This document shows positions 2,979 through 21,582 of a stretch of 64,000 bases of DNA, piece after piece. This DNA is from Eutreptiella sp. 'Long Island Sound 2002' (Eukaryota; Protista; Euglenida), in the NCBI GenBank assembly GCA_964036045.1, contig OZ038379.1:17732001-17796000 (forward strand), written 5' to 3'. The position numbers and the translations under genes were made by a program. The notes below the pieces were generated by a model. It made no database searches, was not told the DNA's origin, and saw only the letters and a list, made by a program, of their open reading frames with translations. The first letter of the stretch is position 1. The number at the start of each line of letters is the position of its first letter.

Positions 2979-5650
2979 CCACTTCTGATTTTGCCCCCCG
3001 CTCTGAAGCGGTGGGGATCCCCGAGACGGCAGGGGTGAGGTAGCCATTTCGCCCACAAGTGGGCCACTTCTGATTTTGCCCCCCGCTCTGAAGCGGTGGG
3101 GATCCCTGAGACGGCAGGGGTGAGGTAGCCATTTCGCCCACAAGTGGGCCACTTCTGTTCCCCCCCCCCGCTCTGAAGCAGCGGGGATCCCTGAGACGGC
3201 AGGGGTGAGGTAGCCATTTTGCCCACAAGTGGGCCACTTCTGATTTTGCCCCCCGCTCTGAAGCGGTGGGGATCCCCGGGACGGCAGGGGTGAGGTAGCC
3301 ATTTCGCCCACTTGTGGGCCACTTCTGATTTTGCCCCCCGCTCTGAAGCGGTGGGGATCCCCGAGACGGCAGGGGTGAGGTAGCCATTTTGCCCACAAGT
3401 GGGCCACTTTTGATTCTGCCCCCCGCTCTGAAGCGGTGGGGATCCCCGAGACGGCAGGGGTGAGGTAGCCATTTCGCCCACTTGTGGGCCACTTCTGATT
3501 TTGCCCCCCGCTCTGAAGCGGTGGGGATCCCCGAGACGGCAGGGGTGAGGTAGCCATTTTGCCCACAAGTGGGCCACTTCTGATTTTGCCCCCCGCTCGG
3601 AAGCGGTGGGGATCCCCGAGACGGCAGGGGTGAGGTAGCCATTTTGCCCACAAGTGGGCCACTTCTGATTTTGCCCCCCGCTCTGAAGCGGTGGGGATCC
3701 CCGGGACGGCAGGGGTGAGGTAGCCATTTCGCCCACAAGTGGGCCACTTCTGATTTTGCCCCCCGCTCTGAAGCGGTGGGGATCCCCGAGACGGCAGGGG
3801 TGAGGTAGCCATTTTGCCCACAAGTGGGCCACTTCTGATTTTGCCCCCCGCTCTGAAGCGGTGGGGATCCCCGAGACGGCAGGGGTGAGGTAGCCATTTT
3901 GCCCACTTGTGGGCCACTTCTGATTTTGCCCCCCGCTCTGAAGCGGTGGGGATCCCTGAGACGGCAGGGGTGAGGTAGCCATTTTGCCCACAAGTGGGCC
4001 ACTTCTGATTTTGCCCCCCGCTCGGAAGCATTGGGGATCCCCGAGACGGCAGGGGTGAGGTAGCCATTTTGCCCACAAGTGGGCCACTTCTGATTTTGCC
4101 CCCCGCTCTGAAGCGGTGGGGATCCCCGAGACGGCAGGGGTGAGGTAGCCATTTTGCCCACAAGTGGGCCACTTCTGATTTCCCCCCCCGCTCTGAAGCG
4201 GTGGGGATCCCCGGGACGGCAGGGGTGAGGTAGCCATTTTGCCCACAAGTGGGCCACTTCTGATTTTGCCCCCCGCTCTGAAGCGGTGGGGATCCCCGGG
4301 ACGGCAGGGGTGAGGTAGCCATTTCGCCCACAAGTGGGCCACTTCTGATTTTGCCCCCCGCTCTGAAGCGGTGGGGATCCCCGAGACGGCAGGGGTGAGG
4401 TAGCCATTTTGCCCACAAGTGGGCCACTTCTGATTTTGCCCCCCGCTCTGAAGCGGTGGGGATCCCCGAGACGGCAGGGGTGAGGTAGCCATTTTGCCCA
4501 CAAGTGGGCCACTTCTGATTTTGCCCCCCGCTCTGAAGCGGTGGGGATCCCTGAGACGGCAGGGGTGAGGTAGCCATTTTGCCCACAAGTGGGCCACTTC
4601 TGATTTTGCCCTCCGCTCGGAAGCGGTGGGGATCCCCGAGACGGCAGGGGTGAGGTAGCCATTTTGCCCACAAGTGGGCCACTTCTGATTTTGCCCCCCG
4701 CTCTGAAGCGGTGGGGATCCCCGAGACGGCAGGGGTGAGGTAGCCATTTCGCCCACTTGTGGGCCACTTCTGATTTTGCCCCCCGCTCTGAAGCGGTGGG
4801 GATCCCTGAGACGGCAGGGGTGAGGTAGCCATTTTGCCCACAAGTGGGCCACTTCTGATTTCCCCCCCCGCTCTGAAGCGGTGGGGATCCCCGGGACGGC
4901 AGGGGTGAGGTAGCCATTTTGCCCACAAGTGGGCCACTTCTGATTTTGCCCCCCGCTCTGAAGCGGTGGGGATCCCCGGGACGGCAGGGGTGAGGTAGCC
5001 ATTTCGCCCACTTGTGGGCCACTCCTGATTTTGCCCCCCGCTCTGAAGCGGTGGGGATCCCCGAGACGGCAGGGGTGAGGTAGCCATTTTGCCCACAAGT
5101 GGGCCACTTCTGATTCTGCCCCCCGCTCTGAAGCGGTGGGGATCCCCGAGACGGCAGGGGTGAGGTAGCCATTTCGCCCACTTGTGGGCCACTTCTGATT
5201 TTGCCCCCCGCTCTGAAGCGGTGGGGATCCCCGGGACGGCAGGGGTGAGGTAGCCATTTTGCCCACAAGTGGGCCACTTCTGATTTTGCCCCCCGCTCTG
5301 AAGCGGTGGGGATCCCTGAGACGGCAGGGGTGAGGTAGCCATTTTGCCCACAAGTGGGCCACTTCTGATTCTGCCCCCCGCTCTGAAGCAGTGGGGATCC
5401 CCGAGACGGCAGGGGTGAGGTAGCCATTTCGCCCACAAGTGGGCCACTTCTGATTTTGCCCCCCGCTCTGAAGCGGTGGGGATCCCCGAGACGGCAGGGG
5501 TGAGGTAGCCATTTTGCCCACAAGTGGGCCACTTCTGATTTTGCCCCCCGCTCGGAAGCGGTGGGGATCCCCGAGACGGCAGGGGTGAGGTAGCCATTTT
5601 GCCCACAAGTGGGCCACTTCTGATTTTGCCCCCCGCTCTGAAGCGGTGGG
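2979..5650. repeat. 85-bp tandem satellite, about 31 units
   Basis: Unit gtggggatccccgagacggcaggggtgaggtagccattttgcccacaagtgggccacttctgattttgccccccgctctgaagcg recurs every 85 bp (e.g. 3011, 3096) with few variants and no unique spacers. Confidence 0.98.
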
Positions 5651-7139: not shown

Positions 7140-8122
7140 CAGGGCCCCTAATTACCCACTTCCAGAAATGAGTGGGTAATGCCGCCGAAATAGCCCCGAG
7201 TAGGAAGAATGGGGGGAAATGGGTCTTGATGTGAGAGTTTTCCGATGTTTTGTGGAAAAATGGGGACAACGTTGCGTGAAAAGCCCAAAAAACCACTTTT
7301 CGTTGGCCCTCGGGGGGGTTGGGGGGGTGTATTGAGCAACATGCCTGAGGAAAAATGGGGGAAAATGGGGAAAATGGGGGAAAATGGGTCCTAGGGGGCG
7401 CCTTAAGCGCAGTGCGCATGCAGTGCGCGCGCAGTGCAATTGTTTGGGCGTTTGGCCACAGTAGAAACCCATACTTTGTGGTACTTTGGACATCATTGTT
7501 CTTTGATAGTAGCTTTTGATGCATTGGGGATCTGGCATTTTTGGATGTTTACCCATTTCTACTTTTGTGCGCAAAATGTTTTCCCATTTCCACCACATCT
7601 ACTCTTTTTCTCGGTCCTTCAAGGTCCCCTCCAGTCCAGTTTGGGTCGCCTGATTCTAAGGGTGTTTCCAAAGGGCGTGCCTAGGGGCTCTTCGAGGGGA
7701 ACATAGTCTAAAAGTAGCGCGCAGTGCGCGCGCAGTGCAAGGATTCCCCCCCACTATGAGAGTTTTCCGATGTTTTGTTGAAAAATGGGGACAACATTGC
7801 GTCCAAAGCTCCACACACCACTTTTTGTTGGCCTGGGGGGGGGCAAGGTGGCGAGCAACATCCTCAGGAAAAATGGGGGAACATAGAGGAAAATGGGGAA
7901 TAACGTGTTTGGAAAAAATTTGCCACTTTGGTGGACAACTGAGTATTTTTGAAATCTTCCTCCACCAATTTCTCTATATTTTCCCCTGGTTTCTTCCCCA
8001 TTTCCCCCCATTCTCCCCCATTTCCCCCCATTTCCCCCCCATTTCCCCCCATTTTTCCTTTGGCAGCGGGAAGTTGAGCGGGTAACTGGGGTGCCACTCT
8101 GGGCGGGTAATCAGGGGCCCTG
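7140..8122. mobile_element. Non-autonomous TIR element (MITE-like, 983 bp) rich in GGGGAAAAT repeats
   Basis: 18-bp TIRs cagggcccctaattaccc (7140-7157) and gggtaatcaggggccctg (8105-8122) differ by 1 mismatch. 6-bp direct repeat caccca at 7134-7139 and 8123-8128. Internal diverged duplication (about 7215-7400 vs 7755-7920). No credible ORF. Confidence 0.75.
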
Positions 8123-8219
8123 CACCCAGGTGGATATGCCTGTATGTCAGTTATGATCTTAGGAATGTAAATGTGGTTGCGAGGGAGGTGAGCCATATGA
8201 CTAAGGACTGACTCTTTTT

Positions 8220-8220
<1 letters not shown>

Positions 8221-8265
<45 letters not shown>

Positions 8266-8313
8266 AATGTGTGTGTGTGTGTGTGTGTGTGTATCTGAAT
8301 GTGTGTATGTGAA

Positions 8314-8350
<37 letters not shown>
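8221..8350. repeat. Interrupted (GT)n microsatellite
   Basis: Long GT run with atgt/gaat interruptions. Confidence 0.9.
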
Positions 8351-9448
8351 ATTTGTGTCTGAAAGAGAGGGCCACAGCAGGTCTCCATATTGAGCTGTAT
8401 GGGCATTGCAGTGAGAAAACCATGCCCGACATCAGTGGCCTGCGCTACGACCATGTTGTACAAAGGCATCGTAACTGCAGTGAAGATGCAAGTTTTCTGG
8501 TGTCATGCGCATTCTTTCGTTCTGTTGTTGGGGATGTGTCATGAGTGACTGGTGACAACATGTCTGCGGCAACACCAACAACTCCTGTAAACATCTCCTC
8601 ATTGTGTACAAAGGCGCCTTGGCAAGGTGATGCAGAGCTCACTATTGTGCCTCATATCACAGACATTATGGACTCTCTTGGAACCCTCATTTTGACAGGA
8701 CGATGCTTCTATGGCACGTGCCTCGCGACAATTTGACCATTTGTTCTGGAGACCTCCAAGGCTTTTGTTGTTTTCGCTTTAGGGTGCTTAGCCTGTCTCT
8801 ACGTGGGGCACCAGACTGAACGCGATGTGCCTATCTTGTATGAGGCCAATGATTGTACATATTTCTGCCATGCAGTTGCGGTGTTCCTGTCTCTTAGCGT
8901 CACCAAAACTGTAGCACTGCAATTTGTTTGGCACAGACATATGAAATGATCAGATCTTTGAGTTTGGTTATTGAGTGCCAGCGCTTCATTTTCGATGTAT
9001 TGAGCCTCCGCTTTGCATGCTTTTTGAAATGGATGGTGCGGACAAGTCCCCATGTCTGTGGACAGCCCCCCCCCCCCTGTAGGGTCCACTGACACGTTGT
9101 GGAACTGAGCCATGGGCTTTAGCTTTGCTAAATGTGTTTCCCAAGGCAAGCGGGACAGTGACAATTCCGAAAACGAGGCCGTTAGTGCTGCAAGTGGCTG
9201 GCAGCATGCATTGCCTTACGATTACAAAATATTATGATGACACTCACACCAATGCATCAAAAGGGCTTTTATAAAAGGTAGGTGCATTTTTCAGTCCTTT
9301 GTGGCATCTTTTTGGGCCATGGTCTTTGATGAACGACGGCCTTTGTTGCCCTATCGATTTTGGGAAGGCATAGGTTTCGGTGTCCCATCATCATGCCACA
9401 GCTTCTTTCAGTGTATGGGTAACAATGATCTAAATTGTGATGCTGCTA

Positions 9449-9840: not shown

Positions 9841-12800
9841 TAGTATATTTGTTAGATGTTGGTAACCACAATACAGTTTTGCTGTTTGATGATGAACTTT
9901 TGATCATAACTGAGGCGTCTCTTGAATAGGTGGCCCTTTTGATCAACTTTGAATTTTGGGCTTTGGTACGGCCGAGGGTGTGCAGCCTTCGCTTTCTTCC
10001 GCTTGGTTGGTGGTGGTGGCCGCCGCTGGCGGGAAGGGGGTTCTCTACCACCAGTTCCCCTAGCCGCCCCCCTCACAGGTAGCTGTCGTAAGTTCCCCTA
10101 GGGCCTAATTGCGGGTAGGTTCCCCTAGGAGACACCCTCTCCATTTGGTCCCCCTGATTCCGCGATGGGAACACCCACCGGCCTTCCCAACCGTCCTTCC
10201 CAATACCCTAGCATAGCCTGTGGGGCACCTATGGGCGGGCTTCCGGTGGATAGCCTTGCCGACAGTAGAGCATTCCCATCAACCGCCTTCCACCACTCTG
10301 CGTACCTCACGGGTGTGGAGTACCCACTCGGTCCTTGGGTGCACTTGGTTGGCATCCACCTGCGCCTCAAGGTTAGGGACCCCCGTGCACTGAGATCCCT
10401 CACGGGTACCCTCTCACGGCAGGGCCTTTGACTTCGGGGCCTCGGGGCCTAGCCCTCCTCTCTGTGCCCCTTGAGGGTGCTCCAAGGCATGGCTTGCCTC
10501 ACTTCTTGTGGTTAGGATCCCCGCGGTTGGCCCGCCGTTCCGCACTCCATGGCGATTGCTGAGCCAGTTTCACGGAGTGTGTTGTCCGGCTACGGCCTAT
10601 AACCCACGACTCCCGCAGAGTTCCCCGCTTGTGTGCCTTTGGTGGGTGTGCTTTGGTGTCCGCATCCGTGGTGCTATTGGTTCAGTCGACCTCCCCTTAT
10701 ATCCCATATCCCCTGTTTGCCCTTATGGTTACCCCCAATCGGTTCCGCTACTAATTGCCCGCAGTGGCCACCCGTTTTGCTCACCGCTTAGGGTCACACG
10801 TAATCATTACCCCTACTGTTTGTCCCTAATGGTTGGGTTCCTCTACTAGTTGTGCTTCATAAGGTTCCGTGCAATTGTTAGTCAACCACTACATTTATGA
10901 CTGGGGCATTTCCTCCGCCATGAACCACTTTGATCTAAACTGAGTGTCATTAGACCAGCAAAACACTAGCTTATGCTCCACCAAGTAGGGTGTCATGTCC
11001 GTCCTCGAGGATAGCAAGGTTGAGGGTGACCTTGTTGACATCAGTCATGAGACAGTGCACATCATCCCCGCCGATGACGAAATCAAAACATGCACTGTGG
11101 AGTTTCGTACACGCCAACCGGGGTTGAAGCGCCAAATGGTTGAGGCCGGGGTGCAACGTACCTACAAGGGCGGACGTATGCTATGCGTCGACTATGTTGG
11201 CAAGCAATTTCCGCGGTGCTTTCCCGCAGAGCCTGCCTTGGGGTTTACTGCCTTTGCGCAGTCCTTTCCCTTCCCATGCAAGTACTTGCTCTGCCCCGCT
11301 TCCTCCTTTCCGTCCCCTCCACGCCAACGAATCCCAATCCCATTTAGCAAAACCATTGCCCAACCGCTGCAAACACATCCAATCTTAATTCAATCCAATT
11401 GCCAAGTGTTGCTCGGACAAAGGCACTGTTTGCACCAACCGACATATACCAGAGCCGGGCGGCAATGTCCCATGCCCGTCCTAATGGTGTCCTATGGAAT
11501 GCAGTCCACAACTCCAGCTGGCTTATGCACAACGTGCCCAGCACCACACTCCTCATGGCAAATGGAGCCGTTTCGATCCCTCCCTCAGTTGAACAGCATA
11601 ACTCACCATTCCTTCGTGGGAGGACCTGCCTGACTTTTTGGCGCCCTCAGATCAGGATATCAAGTGGATAAAGGTCCCGTCACATGTGAATGTTTTTGGC
11701 AATTAGCAAGCCAACGGTTTGGCCAATAAAAGCCGACTTTCCAATTCTCTCTACCCCACCCAAGATAACCCAGCAAGATGCCGCATGAATAGCACAAATA
11801 GACCCCAATTGGGGCCTGCCTCCAGAAGGTCAAGGGTCACACAAGGGGATGTGGAATCCTCTATTCGCCCAACTGCCTTGTATGCACATGGTGACGAATT
11901 TTTTGATGTTCCAAACCCAAAACCTCCTGCTGGAGGGGCTGGATGAGCCTCAAGGTGATCTGCCGGTCGATGTGTGGGCAGATTTGGGGATGAATTTGTT
12001 CACACCATCTTATCTTTTATGGGGAGACTTTGCTCAAAGCGCTCCTTGCACAGCAATTCAGGTGGATAAAGGGATGGAGTAAGGGAACCGTCCGCGCCCC
12101 ACAGTGATCGATCTGGGTATCTGGCAGTCAATAGGAGGACACAATCAGCCTAGTCCAGGTTAGGTGGGTCTGCGCATTACAAAGTGTCACACAGAGTGAT
12201 GACTGTACATAGAGTAACAGAACTGGGAGTTTGTAGGGTAGCAGCTGAATGCATGAGGAACATCCAGTATCTGAGAACGACCATTTTGCGCCCAAAGGAA
12301 AGCACAAGGCCAAGAATATCCCGTTTCCGGAACCTTAGCAGAACCTTATCTTCAAAATGTGACAATTCAGGGAAAATCGGCAGAAATAGGGGGACATGGG
12401 TTTTTGTGTTTTTGATGGAAAAATGGGAATTCTTAGGCCAAACCCCGAAAAATGCACTTTTGGTTGGGGGATGTCATGGGAGGGGCGGGTAATTCCCATT
12501 TTCCCTCGTTCGGTAACAAGGAAAAATGGGGAACACAAGGGAAAATTGGGGGGAAATGGGGGAAATTGGGGGAAAATGGGAATTTTTTGGCTGTTTGATG
12601 GTAAAATGGGAAACTCTTGGGCAAAAAACCCTCAAAGTGCACTTTTGTTGGGGGATCTCACGGAAGGTGCGGTCGATTCCCATTTCCCCCCGCTTGGCCA
12701 CAGGAGAAAATGGGGGAAAATGGGTTGGTTGGTTGGTTGGTTGGTTGCTGCCGCTATGTCCCAGCGCTAGGCCAGGGCCCCCTAGGCTGCAGGCCATGGG

Positions 12801-13199
12801 CGGCAGGGGCTGCGTGACACGCTGTACGTCGCATGAACCACGCGCACCGGGGCTCGCGCGTGCTGCTCTGGCGCGCTTCCGCTCTGTCAGGCACGTCCGG
12901 GTCCACCGCGTTGCGCGCGGCGCCTTGCCCGCCCGTACCTTGTTTCGTCGCTCTCACCTCCTTGCTCTCCCCCCCTCCCCGTCCGTGGTGTGTCCGCGGT
13001 GCGCCCCTCTGTTTCGTGCCGGTGCGCGCCGGCTGAGGCGCCCCGGTGCGTTCCGCCCCGGGGGAGGGGTGGGCGCGGAGGCTCGCCCTCGGCGCTGGCC
13101 CTAGCGCCCCCCCCCTCCCCGCGGGGCCCGCGCGTCCGCCTCGTGTCCTCCCTCTCCCACCCCTGGCCGCATGCACGGGCACTAGTCGGGTGTCGGGCT

Positions 13200-16100
13200 T
13201 CATTCTGTCCACGGTGTCCGAGGGTCCCAGAGGACGGACCTCCGCGGCGCTAGGCCTGTCGAGTGCACATGTCCGGCGTGAGTGTGGCGCACTGCCCACT
13301 CGTGATCTGTGTCAATGAGGTACACGTGGGCGGCGCTTGCCGCCTCCGTGAGCTGGATGTCGTTGTATTCTAAATCTAAGGCATGTACACACATATAAAC
13401 CACAGCTGCCTGATGCCCCAGTACCCCACTTAGCGCCGGTAGTGGCTGCTGCAGCCCATATCGAATGCGTAGCACCCACCGGTCCAGCGCTCGTAACACA
13501 TATTGCAGCAGGACCTCGTCCCCGAAAGACAGCCACTGCCCTGTACCAATTGCTGGGGGCTCCAGGCCACACCGCCCCGGGGCCCACTGTAGTGTGTGAT
13601 CCGGGTGTGCCACCGCTGCCAAGACGTCCTGTACGATGCTGTCGATGTCTTGTCCGGCTGCAGGTAGTACCGGTTGCGCGTGGGCGTGGTCGCTCGGGCT
13701 GATGTCCACGCTGGGGGGTTCCATTGCCGCTGTGCGATGTACGGGGTGTATGATAGAGTACTCGGTCCCCGAGGCATCGCTGACTGCTAGTCCTCGTCGT
13801 CCGCGGGCAGGTCGCAGGCGCCAGGCGGCCCAGGAGGGTCTGGTACATGTCAACGCGCATCAGGTAATGGGCCCGGCATCCCCCCGCCAGGTGTGCGCCC
13901 AGGTCCAGCGCCGGGCCGTGGCAGAACGGGCAGTCCGACGCGCCATACCCCTGTGGCGGAAGACGTACCTCCATGAGGCGCACCAGGGTCATGCGCTGCA
14001 GCTGCAGCAAGGGGAGGTCGTCGGCGCGCAGGGCACACAGAACGGAGGGGTGCCACGGGCGAACGCGGGCTGCGGGGTACCTCCGCAACAGGTCCAGGCG
14101 AGTGCCCGTTTGGTACAGCTCCTGGGCAGCCTCCTTGACGTTGATGATCAGGGCTCGGTGCCAGTGCGCCACGACCCTGCCTGCCAGCAGGTGCGGCCAT
14201 GGCACTGTGGCGCTGCTGGGGCGCTGAGCTGCCCGCTGGGCCAGGTCGTGGGCCGCGCGGTGCATGCTCAGGAGCTGAGGCGCCGGTGGCTGGGCTCGGG
14301 GCCTGGAGGGGACCCACACGTCCACGGAGGGGCTGGAGACGCGCAGCGGAGCAAGCGCACGGTACCAGGGCTCCACCAACGTGCCTGTCGTGGGGGCACG
14401 GTCGTACGTCGAGGCTAGGGTGCTGGTGGAGTCGGCCACGAAGTGAACTGTCCCGCCCCAGCGTCCCAGGGCGTGCAAGGCCTCCAACCGCCCCATCCAT
14501 TCGGCCACAGTGGCGTCGCTACCAGCGGTCCGCAGCGCGCGCCCGCAGCCGTAGAAGTATCCCAAGGTGTCGTGCCACATGACCATGGCCCATGCCGTCA
14601 CCCCTGCGACGTACGCCCCGTCGTAGGAGATGTGCACACTGTTCACTCCGCTCAGGGTCGCCAGGGACCCGAACTCCAGGGCCTCAGTCGGAGCCACGGC
14701 TGACGGCAGGGCGGTCAGGTATACCCCTCGGTCGCGCAGGGCGTCCTGGAGCGCGATGCCCTCATGTTCCCAGCCTCGGATGGGCGGCGTGCTGACCAAG
14801 TACTGCACCGCGGACGCCGCTGCGGCGTTGCGTGACCACGATGATTGCAGGTACGACTGCAGGAGCAGAAGTTCGCAGCGATCTCTGAGCTTGGGTGCCC
14901 CAGGGCCCCCTTCCTCGAGTGCTAGCGTCAGGAACTCCACCGGGGTCCATTTGGGCAGGCAGAACGCTCGGCGGTAGGGCTTGTGTACCTGCACCTGGTG
15001 GGCAGCCAAGCTGCGACCGGGTACTAGGAGGCATTGCAGTAGGTTGCCTCCGCTGGAGACCCCGTATGCCAGCATGGCCCGCAGCCGCAGCAAGGGTGGC
15101 AGCCGGCGTCGCGTTGCTGCTGCCGAGGCCCGCCGGAGCGCCCGAAGGAACCGCCCCAGGGCCGCCGTCAGCGGGAGCTCAGCCAAGATTGGCACCCGCA
15201 GCACCTCTGGCGTCTCCATGGTCGTCAACAGGCCTGCAAGTCCGACTTCTCGTTCAACCAGGCGCGGTCCCGCGGCGTCCAGGCGGACGTAGTGGAAGGC
15301 CAGCTTGGAGGGGTGAACTACCCTGCCGGCAGCCGTAGACACGTCCATGCATCGCGTGACCAGCGCCACCACGCGCGCCATAGTGGCCGATTGGAACCGC
15401 CGGTCATCCGAGTAGGCCTGGTGCTCCATCGGCAGTGAATGCCCTGGCCGGAGGACATCGGGGATGGACAGGGTTGTCCCTGTGAGCATGCAGGTGTTCA
15501 GGACGCACTGAAGAGCCTGAAAACCCTCCCCTGCAAATGAGTCTCCTTGCTCCCTGCCCTCGCCGGGGCTGTAGTACGGGGCGAGTCCCTCGTCTGTCAC
15601 CGGGTGGATTCGCTGACGCGAGTAGAACGCGTCACACCAAGTGCCAAAGTTCCAAACCCCCGGCAGTAGGCGCAGCAGCTCTTCATCATCTTCCCGTTGG
15701 GTGCGCAAGTAGGCGTCCGACTCGTCCCACTCAGCGTCAGCGCATGCCCCAGATAATTCCATTGCTCGCAGCACCGACGCTCGCGTCGTCAGGACCATCA
15801 TGGTGGCTGAAACGGCTGTGCGGTAAGCGAAGAGGTCGGGTGTAAGGGCGCCGGACAGCTCCAGGGTGTAGTTGAGCCTTGTGCGCCCAACCCCCGAGTA
15901 GGAGCGCATGAGGTCGGACTCCACGGCAACCGGCCGATGCGACCTAGCCAGGTGCAGCGGGCCTTTGCCTTTGTACGACCCGTAGCGGATGGTGTCCCTA
16001 GCCACCGAGTCCACATTCCTCAAGAAGCTGCAGTGCATGTAGCGTACTCCCGCCACTGTGCCCCCGAACCTGGTGTGGGTGACGGTACCCGGCACATTGT

Positions 16101-18365
16101 CCAAGGCCGTGGCTGGCGATGTCCGTCTCTCCAGCTGCCGGGCCACGTCGGGCGTGTCGTACAGCGGCCGACCGTTCAGTTCAGCCAGGAGTGCGTCCCG
16201 GTCGTTGCTGGCGTCAGGGTCCCGCCCTCGTCGGAGGGCATGGTGCAGCTGGTCCATTGGGAGCTCGGCTGCGAACCACGGCGTGCGGTGTCGCAGCGGT
16301 GGGACCGACTGGATGGCAAAGCGCTCCTTGTCGATGTGTAGGTGGCGGTACCGTGTCGCGTAGGAGACTTGGGCTGTGACTTCTGGCAGACGTTCTTCCC
16401 TGCTGGATAGGACTGCCCCAGGGGAAGGTAGAATGCCTGAGTACGGCCGGAGGGGGACTGTGGGCAGGCACAGGGCTCGACGGGTCTCACGCCCAATCTG
16501 TACCAAGCTCAGGGCCAGCCGGACGCGGTCGCGGTGAAGTTCCTGTGCTCGTTGACGGTGCTCCTCAGCCCGCGCTTGGAGGAATGCGTCATCGTACGGC
16601 GGCGGTTGGCGCGCCAAGCGCCGGACGTACTGGCTGTCGGGCATGGGCGCTGGCAGACGTTGGCGGGCCAGGTCGTGCAGAGTGGCTATAAACGTATCTG
16701 GCCTGGCGGTGGTGGCGGCCAGGTGTCCCCAGGCTGCACTGGTGAGCGCCCGGACTGCGTCCATGACCGCTCGGGGGGCCAGGCGCCAGCGGAGGTGTTT
16801 CCAATGGAACGGGGCAGGTGCTGGTGAGGGAGATGTCTGCCAGCACTGCCAGGTGGGAACTAGCTGTGGGGATCAGGTGGTGTTCGCTGCTGTGCACGGG
16901 GCCGTTGACGAAGAGGTGGTCTATGGCGGTGGCGCGGATGCGCCCCTGAACGCTGACAAAGTTGGTCGGCGCGTGCGGGGGCAGCACCCGGACATATTTC
17001 TGTAGTCGCGGGTCCCGCCGGAGCGTTACAGCCAGGGGCGCTGAGCCCTCGTCGGTTGAGTTCAGGTCGCCTTGGATGATTGACACGGTCGCTCGGACGT
17101 GGTGAGCACAGGTGAGGAGGCTGTCCATGGTGGTGCACCATTGCGCGTGAGAAGCGTGGGGGTCAAAGCGGGCGTCCAGCAGGAGTACCCGGCTCGCGTG
17201 TCGGGTGTGGCACAGGACCCCCAGCCAGTCGCGGGAGTCATAGATCACGGTGGGGGGGTGCATGGGGAGGATGTCGGCCAGCCGAATCCCCACCGCCAGA
17301 CCGCGCCCCTGTCCAGTCACGGTACCCTGGACCAGGGCGTAAGTCGGGGGCACCAGCGCCTGGGCCGCTGCCAGGTCCCACGTCTCCTGCAGCAGAACGT
17401 ACGAGGGGTCCACTGCCTCTATCAGCGGGCCCACTATTTCTCGCTGGTGCTCAGCGCCAGCCAAGTTGTTACCCAGCACCCAGAAGCTGACGGGTTCGGG
17501 TGTGGCCTGGGGCGCGTCGGGCGGCGGCAGTCGCAGGGCCCACGTGGGCACAGGCAGTACAGTTGCAGGCGGTGGCAGACCCATGCACATTGCCCAGCGG
17601 GACCCGAACAGGGCGACTCCGCCTGTGTAGTGGTGGCAGCCGTCCCACAAGTGCGCCCTTTTTGCCACGTCGGCCGTGAGGAGGGGGTGCTGGGCCGATT
17701 GAGCTACGCAAAAGAGTCGGGGCTGGGGGGCGGCGTCCTGGGGTGCGTGCACTGCTGCTACCGATGCCCGCATTTTACCGCACATGGCGCAGACGGACGA
17801 GAGCACGTGGATGTCGGGGGAGGAGGACCGTAGTAGCCACGGTTCATGCGGGCCACGTCGGGCGTACGAGGGCGGCAGTATCGGCACCTTCAGCACGGGG
17901 GGGGGCGTCGTCCCAGAACGAGACCCACGTGTCCGCGCACCGGATCGGGGGGGTGACGGCGGCCGCGGGGGGCAGTTGGCTGACTGCGCGCACCCAGGCG
18001 TGGGTCGCATCCAGGGCGGCGCCACGAGCTTCAGGGGGCAACTGGCTGATTGCCGCTGGGATGGGGTCGCAGAGGGCGCCTGGCGAGGGGGACTGTAGCG
18101 CGTAGGCCTGCAGGGACGCCGGGGAGCCACATGACGTGCAGGCCATATTGGCGATGGACCCGTGTCGAGACATGGCCCATGTGCCGCAGGCGGTGCAGAT
18201 GCTGGACGGGTGCAGCAAGCTTGGGGGTTCGGTCGCTGGGGCGGTGGGCAGGGGGATCTGCCGGCGTGTCGTCGGCCTGGGGTGGGTCTCAGCTAGGGCG
18301 TGGGCCAATCGGAGGACCCCATGGTCCGGGGTGCAGGTGGGGGGGAGGGTGAGCGGCAGCAGCAG
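13200..18365 (-). pseudogene. LINE ORF2: N-terminal Cys-rich fingers, APE endonuclease, reverse transcriptase, RNase H, CCHC finger, C-terminal extension; about 3 frameshifts
   Basis: APE motifs GNNLAG, LLQET, QGDLNS, AIDHLF, SSH (about 16850-17490). RT motifs EQGDSFAG and YSDD (15403-15414). RNase H motifs ISYDGA, AEW, ADS, WVPSR, AAHDLA (about 14250-14640). CPFCHGPALDLGAHLAGGC finger. Frame changes near the G9 run (17897-17905), at about 16825 and at about 13830 join ORFs 17844-18308, 16589-18130, 13312-16764 and 13200-13853. Confidence 0.9.
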
Positions 18366-20420
18366 TCATTTTCGGCGTCGCGTGGGCCAGGGCTGTCCCT
18401 GCGACATCTGCATGGGGGGGGGGCCAGTTGACTCCGAGCGGGCGTGCAGGGCCACGTGCGGTCCGTGCGGGGGGGGGCGCTCCGCGCTCAAGGGCGGCGG
18501 TGGCCCAGGGAGGCTCTGCGCAGCGCGGTCCCAGGATGACGGCGGGCGATGGTGCTGAGGGCCTTCGTCAGTACGTCTGCGCTTCATGTCCTGCTCCGGT
18601 GAGGGGCCTGGGCGCAGGTGAGGGGGCACCGTTAGTGCAGTGAGGTCCACGTGGAAGACCTCCCCGTTGGTCTGCCTGCGGCTGTCGAGCGTCACCCCCC
18701 ACATGCCGTCAAACTCGTACCAGCGGGAGGGGTAGTCGGAGAAGAGGTTCTCGAACACGGACGCTGGGATGACGGCGAACCCGTATCCCCGCTGTTGGTC
18801 GGGGGGCGTCAGATAGACGGGCGTCTGGAACAGGGCGCTGAGGCCAACTGACACCTCAGGGGCTCGCAGGTCGCGGAGTCCAGAAATCCGCACCACCCTG
18901 GTGGGCGGCGTGCGGCCAGGCCCAGCTTCGCTTGCGGGCGCTGGCTGGTCCACCCAAGGGCGGGGGGCTGTCGGCGACGGTTGCTGTGTGGCCTCGTTCG
19001 GCGGGCGGGCCATGGGGGGGGCCGTGGCAGCGGTTGCGAGAGGGGGGGGCGCTCCGAGCTTGGGGCCCTTCCCCAGGAACCACTGGTAGCTATCTCCTTC
19101 TGTAACGGCGAGGGCCCTCTTGGTGGCCTCCAGCAGCACGTCGTGTTGCGCTATGCGGTCGAGGCCCCTCACGAGCGCCAACATGCCCTTACGGAACTCC
19201 TGCTCGTCGTTCACGTTGCCGATGTGCTGGAAGGCGGAGATGGGCAGGTCGTCGGTGGAGGCCACAGCCAGCCCAGCCTGGGACCATCTGGCATAGCCCA
19301 GGGACGCCGCGTCCGCTATGGTCTTGTCCACGGTTTCGAGTGTGCGACATACCCTAGCTCCGTCAACTGCCGAGCCGTGGCGCTGTTGCACATGGTCGAG
19401 GAGGCGCTGGAGGTCGGCTGTCATACGGGCCTGGGTGGATGCCGGGCACGAGGACCACACCGCTTTGACGGCGGTGACTAGGGCCGCTGGGACTGATGCC
19501 ATGCCCAGGTTCTGCAGCACGCGGGCGGATGTGCCGTATGGGCGGGCGAGGGCCGCGACCGCCGCAGCGACTTGCCCGACTTGCGGCCCCGGGACACATC
19601 CGAGCGTATCCAGCTCTCGCAGCATGTTCTCGGGGTCGGCTGGCGCGGGCCCCTGCAGAATTGACAGCCACTGTGGGGTGTCACTCTGGCTGGACCCGTG
19701 CGGCTGCGAGAGGCTTCTCTCCAAAGACTGCAACCGCGTGAGAGCATCCGGCATGGCGAGGCTCCCGTCCTTCTCCCGTTCCCGGAGCTCGTTCTGCCAT
19801 TCCCGCTGGGATAGGGGGCACGGGCCGGGGAGCTTGACCCTTGCGGCGTTAGTGGTGAACGCGGGGGTCTCCCATGCCAGCTTCAGGCCGTGCCTCGACG
19901 CTGTCCAAGAGGCCAGCCAGTGCAGGAGGGGCACCCGCAGCGTGACCGGCTGCACTGTGGTGACGTTCCCCAGAAGCAGCAGGAGGTCCTCAAAGGCCAG
20001 GCCACGGATCTGGTCGCTGCCCCAGGCCTCCATGTGTCTCGCCGCAGCTTGCACCAGGTCCGATCTCCGAGGCGCCGCTTCCCGCGACGCGTACTCCATC
20101 AGCTCCTCCATGCACGTCTGGTAAGTGCGCCACGAGTACCCCGGCAGGCGCTCCTCCATGACGCTCAGGTCGTACGGCTGCAGTCTCGGCGGCTTCGACG
20201 GGCTGGCCGGCGCGCACCAGGTCACCGCTACGGACGCCAGAGTGGGGCTGCGCGGTACAGGCACCCCCATGACATTGATCTTCGCCTCGTGGTGTCGCGC
20301 CGTGAGCTCCACCGTCGCTTGAGCCGCGTTCCACACGGCGCCAGTGATCGGGAACGCGTCTGCGGGGCGGAGCTGCTCCTGCTGCTCAGCCGGCGAGAGC
20401 GACGCGAATGGGTGCGGCAT
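18366..20420 (-). CDS. LINE ORF1 (684 aa) with a C-terminal RRM-like domain
   Basis: Long uninterrupted ATG-started ORF directly upstream of ORF2. RNP2-like VRISGL (about 18877-18894) and RNP1-like RGYGFAVI (18768-18791). Confidence 0.8.
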   Translation of the reverse strand: MPHPFASLSPAEQQEQLRPADAFPITGAVWNAAQATVELTARHHEAKINVMGVPVPRSPTLASVAVTWCAPASPSKPPRLQPYDLSVMEERLPGYSWRTYQTCMEELMEYASREAAPRRSDLVQAAARHMEAWGSDQIRGLAFEDLLLLLGNVTTVQPVTLRVPLLHWLASWTASRHGLKLAWETPAFTTNAARVKLPGPCPLSQREWQNELREREKDGSLAMPDALTRLQSLERSLSQPHGSSQSDTPQWLSILQGPAPADPENMLRELDTLGCVPGPQVGQVAAAVAALARPYGTSARVLQNLGMASVPAALVTAVKAVWSSCPASTQARMTADLQRLLDHVQQRHGSAVDGARVCRTLETVDKTIADAASLGYARWSQAGLAVASTDDLPISAFQHIGNVNDEQEFRKGMLALVRGLDRIAQHDVLLEATKRALAVTEGDSYQWFLGKGPKLGAPPPLATAATAPPMARPPNEATQQPSPTAPRPWVDQPAPASEAGPGRTPPTRVVRISGLRDLRAPEVSVGLSALFQTPVYLTPPDQQRGYGFAVIPASVFENLFSDYPSRWYEFDGMWGVTLDSRRQTNGEVFHVDLTALTVPPHLRPGPSPEQDMKRRRTDEGPQHHRPPSSWDRAAQSLPGPPPPLSAERPPPHGPHVALHARSESTGPPPMQMSQGQPWPTRRRK

Positions 20421-21582
20421 ACTGTGTCACTGCCCTGTGACAAGTACGCCGCTGGTGTGCGGGGTGCAGGGCGCCAACGCACACACACTGGTTGGGGGCT
20501 AGCCCTCGTCCAGCGCATCTAGTTGGCACCCGGGCCAGCCTGTCCGCGTCGCTCCGCGTGGGGGGGGGGTCCCCTTGCCCGCTCTGTTACGCGTGGTCGC
20601 CGTGGTCGCGCGCTCGCTCCGTGCTGTGCTAGTGTGTGTTCGTAGCCCAGGGCGGCGAACCGAGTGGGGCTGGCTCAACAACCCCCTAGAGGGCCTGTGT
20701 CTGTGTGGTGCTGTGGCGAGGCGTCGAGACGCCTGAGGGGGCGCTGGTGTGTGTCGCGCTGCCCCTTTGGCCCTAAGGCCTTTGTGCATTGTGCGGTGGA
20801 GGTGGGGCTGGCCGCTAGGGCTCAGCCCGGGGGCCATTGAGCCTGGCCCCCCCCTCGTGCTGTGCTGCCCGGGTGCCACCAGGCCCTAGGGCCCCTCCGG
20901 GTACGCCACCCTGGGAGCAGGAGGGGGTCACCTGTGCGGGGCACCGTCGGGGCACCCGCTCCCCTTTGTCGTCGTCCTTCGCCACCTGTTGAGCGGGCAG
21001 GGGTGCGGCGGGGCGGGGGGGGGGGGGGTACACTTGGTATGGCAGTGGTGCGACTGCCCCTCACAGGCTGCACCTCTGACCCCAGGGGGCGCCCAGGGCG
21101 GGTGGCGGCAGTGGCCGGCCTGACTCGGTGGGGGAAAATGGGGAAACATCGGGGAAATGGGGGAAACTGGCATCATGACTTTTCCCGAAGTTTCCATTCC
21201 GTTTTCCAAGCCACTCCCCCTTTAGTTTCTCCATATTCCCCATTTCCCCCATGTTTTCCCCATTCACCCCCCCCCCCCCAGCCCCCCGTTTTCCCCCACT
21301 TGCCCCCATTTTCCCCTCCCCCCCCCCCCCCGGATTTTTCCTATTTCCCCCTTTTTTGTCCAGGAACCTTATCGGGGACTCAAGGTGCCACCTGGGCCAG
21401 GATATTCCGGGCCTTGAAAGCGCCATGGATGCAGAGAGTGCCTGAGATCCCTGGCCGAGGTCTTGTGCTGTGCCTCGTAAACCATTGCGCTTCACCATCG
21501 CACCTTTTCATCTGCCAGGGCCCAGCACTTTCTTCGCCCCCGTCCCCCCAAATCGTGCGGTCGTCCTTCGCTTCGTCTCGCC

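Follow-up and report, generated by a model that had tools for sequence, protein, structure and literature searches.

In long interspersed nuclear elements (LINEs), pairing between the tail of the element RNA and the nicked target has long been assumed to act in target-primed reverse transcription (TPRT). Human LINE-1, which lacks an RNase H and takes its tail from polyadenylation, nicks its target at TTTT/AA, where the T-run base-pairs with the poly(A) tail. The I factor of Drosophila has two open reading frames (ORFs), the second of which (ORF2) encodes an AP-endonuclease (APE), a reverse transcriptase (RT) and an RNase H, and its reverse transcription starts at a (TAA)n tail. Moreover, some LINEs are specific for microsatellites or other repeats and carry repeat-like tails related to their targets, namely Kibi and Koshi in the Tx1 group, Waldo and Mino as well as TRAS and SART in the R1 clade, and Dong. 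In trypanosomatids, the diverged families of the L1Tc/ingi elements have a 5' hallmark in common, called Pr77, and short non-autonomous derivatives known as NARTc and RIME (PMC4748587). As for euglenids, the assembly of Euglena gracilis was reported with 1.5% of the genome labelled as LINE and 33% as unclassified repeats (PMC11252322). In the literature, we found no account of Euglena LINEs or of a LINE with an (AACC)n tail. Here we analyze a stretch of 64,000 nt from Eutreptiella sp. 'Long Island Sound 2002' (contig OZ038379.1; hereafter the window, meaning the whole of this stretch), in which an original prediction, made from the letters alone, had placed a full-length LINE with such a tail, and we compare this LINE with its relatives in the 2.28-Gb genome (2,317 contigs). 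At a probability of about 0.8, we consider that it is best explained as an 8.4-kb APE-type LINE of a young family, with at least 128 recognisable 3' ends in this euglenid genome, whose tail is encoded by the element and whose insertion takes place at runs of G.

The element is a non-LTR (long terminal repeat) retrotransposon of 8,404 bp, which lies on the minus strand with its 5' end at 21128 and its 3' end at 12725. Both ends are directly abutted by a 14-bp target-site duplication (TSD), which reads tgggggaaaatggg on the plus strand and CCCATTTTCCCCCA on the element strand, and the upstream (5') copy at 21129-21142 and the downstream (3') copy at 12711-12724 match each other exactly. The tail appears as (GGTT)6 on the plus strand at 12723-12746, namely (AACC)6 on the element strand, and its final CC falls within the TSD 14-mer; it is the sole run of this kind in the window, with 0.02 expected by chance. 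In addition, the motif GGGGAAAATGGG has 22 matches in the window when up to one mismatch is allowed, against 1.0 expected, and these are found at 7358-7388, 7886-7897 and 12549-12580 as well as in both flanks of the element. The duplication, the tail whose terminal CC overlaps the target, and the abundance of the target motif, all of which had been pointed out in the original prediction, are hence present at this locus. The flanks themselves are made of the GGGGAAAATGGG-type repeat, which makes a 14-bp match less improbable here than in unique DNA; the position and length of the TSD nevertheless agree with the 12-14-bp duplications of other copies.

Regarding the tail, its form is a property of the whole family. 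Across the genome, a search with the last 600 nt of the element gave at least 163 first-look candidates, and the 40 that were scored are 82-98% identical, the 3' UTR (untranslated region) occupying 12747-13202 of the window on the minus strand. The first 30 copies were recovered by way of this 3' UTR and not by way of the tail, and all 30 end in (AACC)3-7 and none in poly(A), so the replacement of poly(A) by (AACC)n, which had been noticed for the window copy, extends to the family. A 26-nt signature composed of the 3' end and the tail matches the genome 128 times, against 0 times for its reversed control. Over 86 distinct sites, the tail has five units in 49, six in 24, four in 7, three in 4 and seven in 2, and this narrow range of lengths argues that the tail would be carried by the element RNA. 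It might be supposed that the element is rather specific for (AACC)n microsatellites, so that the so-called tail is in fact target sequence, and the sister families described below do occupy long microsatellites such as (GTG)n. However, AACC units are seen at no 5' junction and in none of the TSDs, and five or six units in 73 of the 86 copies make a tightly set length; the AACC-free junctions and duplications, together with the fixed tail, contradict such targeting, and we give it practically no credence.

To describe the target, both junctions were read in ten further copies, comprising one full-length copy, one truncated at 5037, two shorter truncated copies and six internally deleted derivatives. 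Their TSDs are 9-16 bp long, and eight of the ten begin with CCC and have a length of 12-14 bp. On the element strand, the duplications read CCCGCCCCGTCT (12 bp), CCCTCCCCACCCT, CCCTGCCGTATCG, CCCCCCCCCATAC and CCCTGTCCCCCAC (13 bp each), and CCCACATCCTCCCC and CCCTGTGCTGCACT (14 bp each). The remaining three are a poly-C run of about 16 bp, a duplication of 16 bp in which one base is mismatched, and a 9-mer (about 9 bp) that also has 5 bp in common with the 5' end of the element. The base preceding the upstream TSD copy is C wherever it is readable. At the other junction, the last AACC is followed by C in 70 of the 86 distinct 3' flanks (81%), compared with 38% for local C on the same strand (p = 3e-16), and in 27 of the 30 first flanks, which are free of bias. 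From +1 to +13, C accounts for 47-72% of the bases (mean 59%), and at +7 to +9 it peaks a second time at 65-72% (p = 2e-10); it goes down to 34-41% at +14 to +16, which is where the TSD ends, and up again at +17 to +20.

The original prediction had gone further and proposed a candidate repeat-targeting family, for which dispersed G-rich repeats, here the GGGGAAAAT repeat, would serve as a safe harbour. Three copies, namely that of the window, L024 and L030, are indeed inserted in the GGGGAAAAT-type repeat, and its motif is abundant in the window. Sorting of the 86 distinct sites tells against such targeting, as only three lie in the GGGGAAAAT-type repeat, while 15 lie in poly-C tracts of at least six, 8 in CT-rich repeats, 3 in a ATCCTCCCC satellite and 57 elsewhere, unique-looking DNA included; no host sequence dominates these sites, and the TSDs of other copies are unrelated beyond the leading C-run. 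What the flanks of the (AACC)n 3' ends have in common is thus a C-run from +1 and a C-rich stretch of 13 bp, and not a repeat. A family devoted to the GGGGAAAAT repeat is therefore highly improbable, and the window copy sits in that repeat simply because it supplies GGGG runs.

For the mechanism of insertion, we propose the following scenario. The element RNA would terminate in about five AACC units encoded by the element, and the ORF2 protein, with its AP-endonuclease, RT and RNase H, would nick the target strand within a G-run at GGG^G. The released ...GG-3' end may then pair with a CC of the tail and prime reverse transcription, and a cut of the second strand 12-14 bp downstream would leave a C-rich TSD beginning with CCC. 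The first nick is placed at GGG^G (on the plus strand in the window) because priming of the cDNA would use the strand complementary to the downstream copy of the TSD, and because the TSDs begin with CCC after a C. The tail-target pairing suggested in the original prediction gains support here, since the tail end overlaps the target in nearly every copy and C stands at +1 in 70/86.

There is another way to obtain the same C-run, in which the endonuclease has little sequence preference of its own and the selection takes place at priming instead of cleavage, because ...GG-3' ends are those that anneal to the AACC tail. The overlap of tail and junction is two nucleotides in nearly all copies, and in the sister families the overlap tracks the tail sequence, both of which fit with this possibility. 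On the other hand, pairing of two nucleotides leaves unexplained the C at +1, the C before the TSD, the peak at +7 to +9 and the dip at +14 to +16. Moreover, L011, which is a longer copy, and L018, which is a deletion derivative, share one position in one host repeat, a coincidence suggesting that the recognised site may exceed two or three bases. Selection at priming by itself is thus an unlikely explanation. The preference might be due to the nuclease, to annealing or to the two combined, and we favour a combination in which the protein itself has a real if loose preference for the site and pairing acts as a further filter, since a 2-base pairing cannot account for the third and fourth C or for the peak at +7 to +9.

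Several points weigh against the proposed scenario of insertion at G-runs. The nick site is read from the edges of the TSDs, and the 3' end of the element RNA is deduced from genomic copies only. Recognition at the level of the protein would be needed beyond the 2-nt pairing for the third C and for +7 to +9. At the same time, the 60 additional flanks were chosen by a pattern containing the tail, by which they are unbiased for the flank and biased for the presence of the tail, and some flanks are near-duplicates produced by segmental duplication (such as L065/L066 or L011/L018/L064/L088).

Two of the 5' junctions show further details. In L017, about 30 unmatched nucleotides stand between the upstream TSD copy and the start of the alignment of this 5'-truncated copy, and they could be added nucleotides or the outcome of a template switch at 5' joining. 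The 5' junction of L025 has a microhomology of 5 bp.

The enzyme of the element is hard to recognise by sequence. ORF2 (13203-18365 on the minus strand, delimited by tblastn of intact relatives, stop-to-stop frames and alignment with the full-length sister copy L032) has, in order, an N-terminal Cys motif, an AP-endonuclease, an RT, an RNase H, a CCHC knuckle and a C-terminal domain of about 200 aa. The AP-endonuclease, upstream of the RT at ORF2 residues of about 294-485 (16910-17485), matches PF03372 with E = 0.012 in the window copy, and full-length relatives match at the equivalent position with E from 3.5e-13 to 3.5e-4. When the three long ORFs of the window were scanned with Pfam, this APE match was weak and no RT was found at E up to 10; among PDB chains, neither phmmer nor a 14-sequence family profile found an RT by sequence. 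Nevertheless, the RT motifs RPV, DESDAY, QGDSF, YSDD and HPSK can be read in ORF2, the distant relative P0116 matches RVT_1 at E = 4e-6, slightly short of the curated cut-off, and of the 30 nearest ESM-Atlas clusters that bear a name, 27 are RVT_1.

Structure prediction gives a clearer answer. An AlphaFold model of ORF2 residues 700-1420, made with a 38-sequence alignment, is confident (predicted local distance difference test, pLDDT, 88.5; predicted template modelling score, pTM, 0.90), and its best Foldseek matches (E about 1e-14) are R2 proteins, from silkworm, zebra finch and turtle, with human LINE-1 ORF2p at 5e-13 to 2e-11 and an identity of 9-10% in the structural alignment. Matches to group II intron, DRT9 and viral polymerases are far weaker (about 1e-7). 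The RT core so assigned, from the model, Foldseek and the Atlas neighbours together, spans 15070-15972 with YSDD at 15417. A second AF2 model, which covers residues 1216-1726, finds its match in E. coli RNase HI (Foldseek E = 6e-7, target TM-score 0.6-0.7) and places the RNase H domain at 14170-14652. The CCHC knuckle (C-x2-C ... H-x4-C; 13870-13932) is defined by C265, C268, H278 and C283, which are near-invariant in the alignment. The C-terminal domain, which tblastn of intact relatives locates at 13203-13829 in another frame of the window copy, is modelled with confidence, and a search with its fold yielded RNase H matches alone, so that the domain itself is not recognised. Since the APE is detected by Pfam and the RT and RNase H by their predicted folds, the element is, on these models, an APE-type LINE with RNase H and an unusually divergent sequence. 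The other hallmarks of LINEs are seen as well, including the lack of terminal repeats, the variable TSDs, the 5' truncations at many positions and the simple 3' tail.

Comparison with the described systems then shows where the element stands. With LINE-1 it has in common the RT fold, 5' truncation, variable TSDs and the logic of tail and target, if our reading is right that a nick at GGG^G lets a G-run pair with the CC of the tail; it differs in having an RNase H and in the tail being encoded by the element. The likeness to the I factor is one of architecture alone, that is, two ORFs, the order of APE, RT and RNase H, and a tail of tandem repeats, whereas the repeat unit and the target are others and a similarity of sequence is undetectable by Pfam or HMMER. 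The L1Tc/ingi elements belong to the same host phylum, have the AP-endonuclease, RT and RNase H in the same order, and likewise possess a conserved hallmark at the 5' terminus and derivatives made of 5' and 3' ends, NARTc and RIME resembling the deletion derivative described below. They have, however, poly(A) and one long ORF, whereas the present element has ORF1 and ORF2 separated by a TGA, ends in (AACC)n and carries a CCHC knuckle. As to the microsatellite-specific LINEs, it is the sister families that resemble them, such as those with an (AACTG)n or a (GACCCT)n tail that are inserted in arrays of (GTG)n, whereas the AACC family is found in many sequences and a short G-run suffices for it.

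The coding state of the window copy was also examined. The 5' UTR of 708 nt is followed by ORF1 (20420-18366, minus strand), which is intact with 684 aa in the ORF list and has no recognised function, with neither a Pfam nor an Atlas match. ORF1 ends with a TGA and ORF2 carries on in the same frame (18363-18368 of the window, minus strand; L032:6104-6106). The first ATG in ORF2 comes more than 60 codons past this TGA, which suggests that ORF2 may be translated by stop-codon readthrough or reinitiation. The window copy has its ORF2 spread over four frames by frame-breaking indels near 17905, 16816 and 13818 as judged against L032, a full-length sister copy on contig C17 that is 98.2% identical to the window copy, and whose ORF1 has 684 aa and whose ORF2 runs uninterrupted for 1,726 codons. 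Because of these three indels, the window copy is unable to encode its enzyme, although it is structurally complete. The term full-length used in the original prediction is thus right for the structure, as the 5' end is common to L032 and the deletion derivatives, and does not hold for the coding capacity.

The extreme 5' end deserves attention. The first 100 nt or so (21029-21128; the remaining 5' UTR, up to the ATG of ORF1, is 20421-21028) are conserved far more strongly from family to family than the proteins, whose identity is 20-39%, and counterparts of this leader were found at L098:715-816, L101:1010-1110 and L015:334-433. The consensus fold is multi-branched and has 28 pairs, of which 4 show compensatory changes. 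Rfam gave, on the element, no leader family and no model of a ribozyme like that of hepatitis delta virus (HDV), and nothing apart from weak microRNA-like noise in the flank; a 5' HDV-like ribozyme, which was considered, is therefore unsupported. By analogy, the leader may be a promoter or an RNA-processing hallmark comparable to Pr77 of trypanosome LINEs, a likeness that would be one of position and role.

We further asked how large the lineage is to which the element belongs. Word-index protein searches returned 12 and 6 proteins, all of them unnamed ENA entries. An exhaustive profile search over 1.84 billion representatives gave 804 matches at E up to 1e-3, all from ENA, Logan or JGI, among which there are one 'ribonuclease HI', some 'hypothetical protein' and otherwise unnamed entries, with no bridge to a described clade. 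The original prediction of a possibly undescribed lineage is borne out as far as is visible, with no relative bearing a name and an RT invisible to Pfam. Three of the ENA proteins (P0008, P0037 and P0116) are encoded with 100% identity in the present genome, each with thousands of first-look candidates, and in several families intact copies at 99-100% identity are numerous, so the lineage is large and recently active in this genome. A lineage with an RT that escapes Pfam and with thousands of first-look candidates per family is probably part of the unclassified-repeat gap.

The 3' ends of five sister families were read at L093-L104 (on contigs C2, C13, C6, C18, C22, C14, C15, C19, C7, C4 and C3 of the assembly, G000), and every family has a tail of its own. 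The P0008 family ends in (CCAAA/CCCAAA)n followed by C-runs, and its 75%-identical sister in (CCCAA)3 followed by a C-run or poly-C. In the P0037 family, the tail is (AGACACC)3 and T/C-rich sequence follows. The P0116 family with (GACCCT)3, and its 39%-identical relative with (AACTG)3-4, are both followed by long (GTG)n tracts, of about 0.5-0.9 kb. Tails of the CCCAA type are thus paired with C-runs, and those that end in ...CTG with (GTG)n. In every family, the last two or three bases of the tail are ambiguous with the target. Related elements with differing repeat tails and matching targets make the role of tail-target pairing in TPRT directly testable. A more general picture, which we offer tentatively and at somewhat less than even odds, is that these families form a deep unnamed clade of non-LTR elements, seemingly restricted to euglenids, where each family encodes its own tandem-repeat tail of 4-7 nt matching the nicked target, where the tail and the specificity co-evolve from a loose G-run (AACC) to a strict microsatellite such as (GTG)n, and where the 100-nt 5' hallmark plays a role like that of Pr77. 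The main interest lies in this lineage-wide link of tail and target, and the result for the window itself is modest, namely one dead copy of a young family at a G-run.

Within the AACC family, an internally deleted derivative of about 1.75 kb, in which positions 1-1144 of the element are joined to 7804-8404, makes up six of the 30 copies (L015, L016, L018, L019, L020 and L025). Each of these has its own TSD, so this non-autonomous derivative has repeatedly been mobilised in trans.

Some observations concern the sequences around the copies. The (AACTG)n-family copies are clustered about 9-10 kb apart at C14:40.67-40.72 Mb and C22:16.25-16.38 Mb, and on C22 some P0116 copies are interspersed among them. 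An association of the AACC family with telomeres was considered and rejected, as no obvious clustering at contig ends was seen in the list of signature matches, judged by eye and not by count. A search for a paralogous empty site within the window matched the short repeat motif alone. The host DNA of the window insertion (12400-12724 and 21143-21340; also 7212-8049) is a dispersed repeat in which the arrays on one side consist of GGGGAAAATGGG-like units and those on the other side of the complement, and this arrangement leads to weak hairpin-like Rfam noise (microRNA models) at 21113-21283. One duplicated insertion (L065/L066) has six tail units in one copy and ten in the other, which shows some slippage of the tail after insertion. 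About 19 3'-end copies lie on C20 (G000:C20:17.83-19.05 Mb) on the same strand, 45-97 kb apart, and look like a large tandem segmental duplication carrying one insertion, not like separate insertions. Finally, three family 3' ends are found within 5 kb at G000:C2:48380268-48385336, inside a CATAGGTCCCCA-type satellite (L091 and L092), and L043, at another location, has a flank similar to this satellite; the cluster on C2 could have arisen by repeated insertion into the satellite, or by amplification of the satellite along with the insert.

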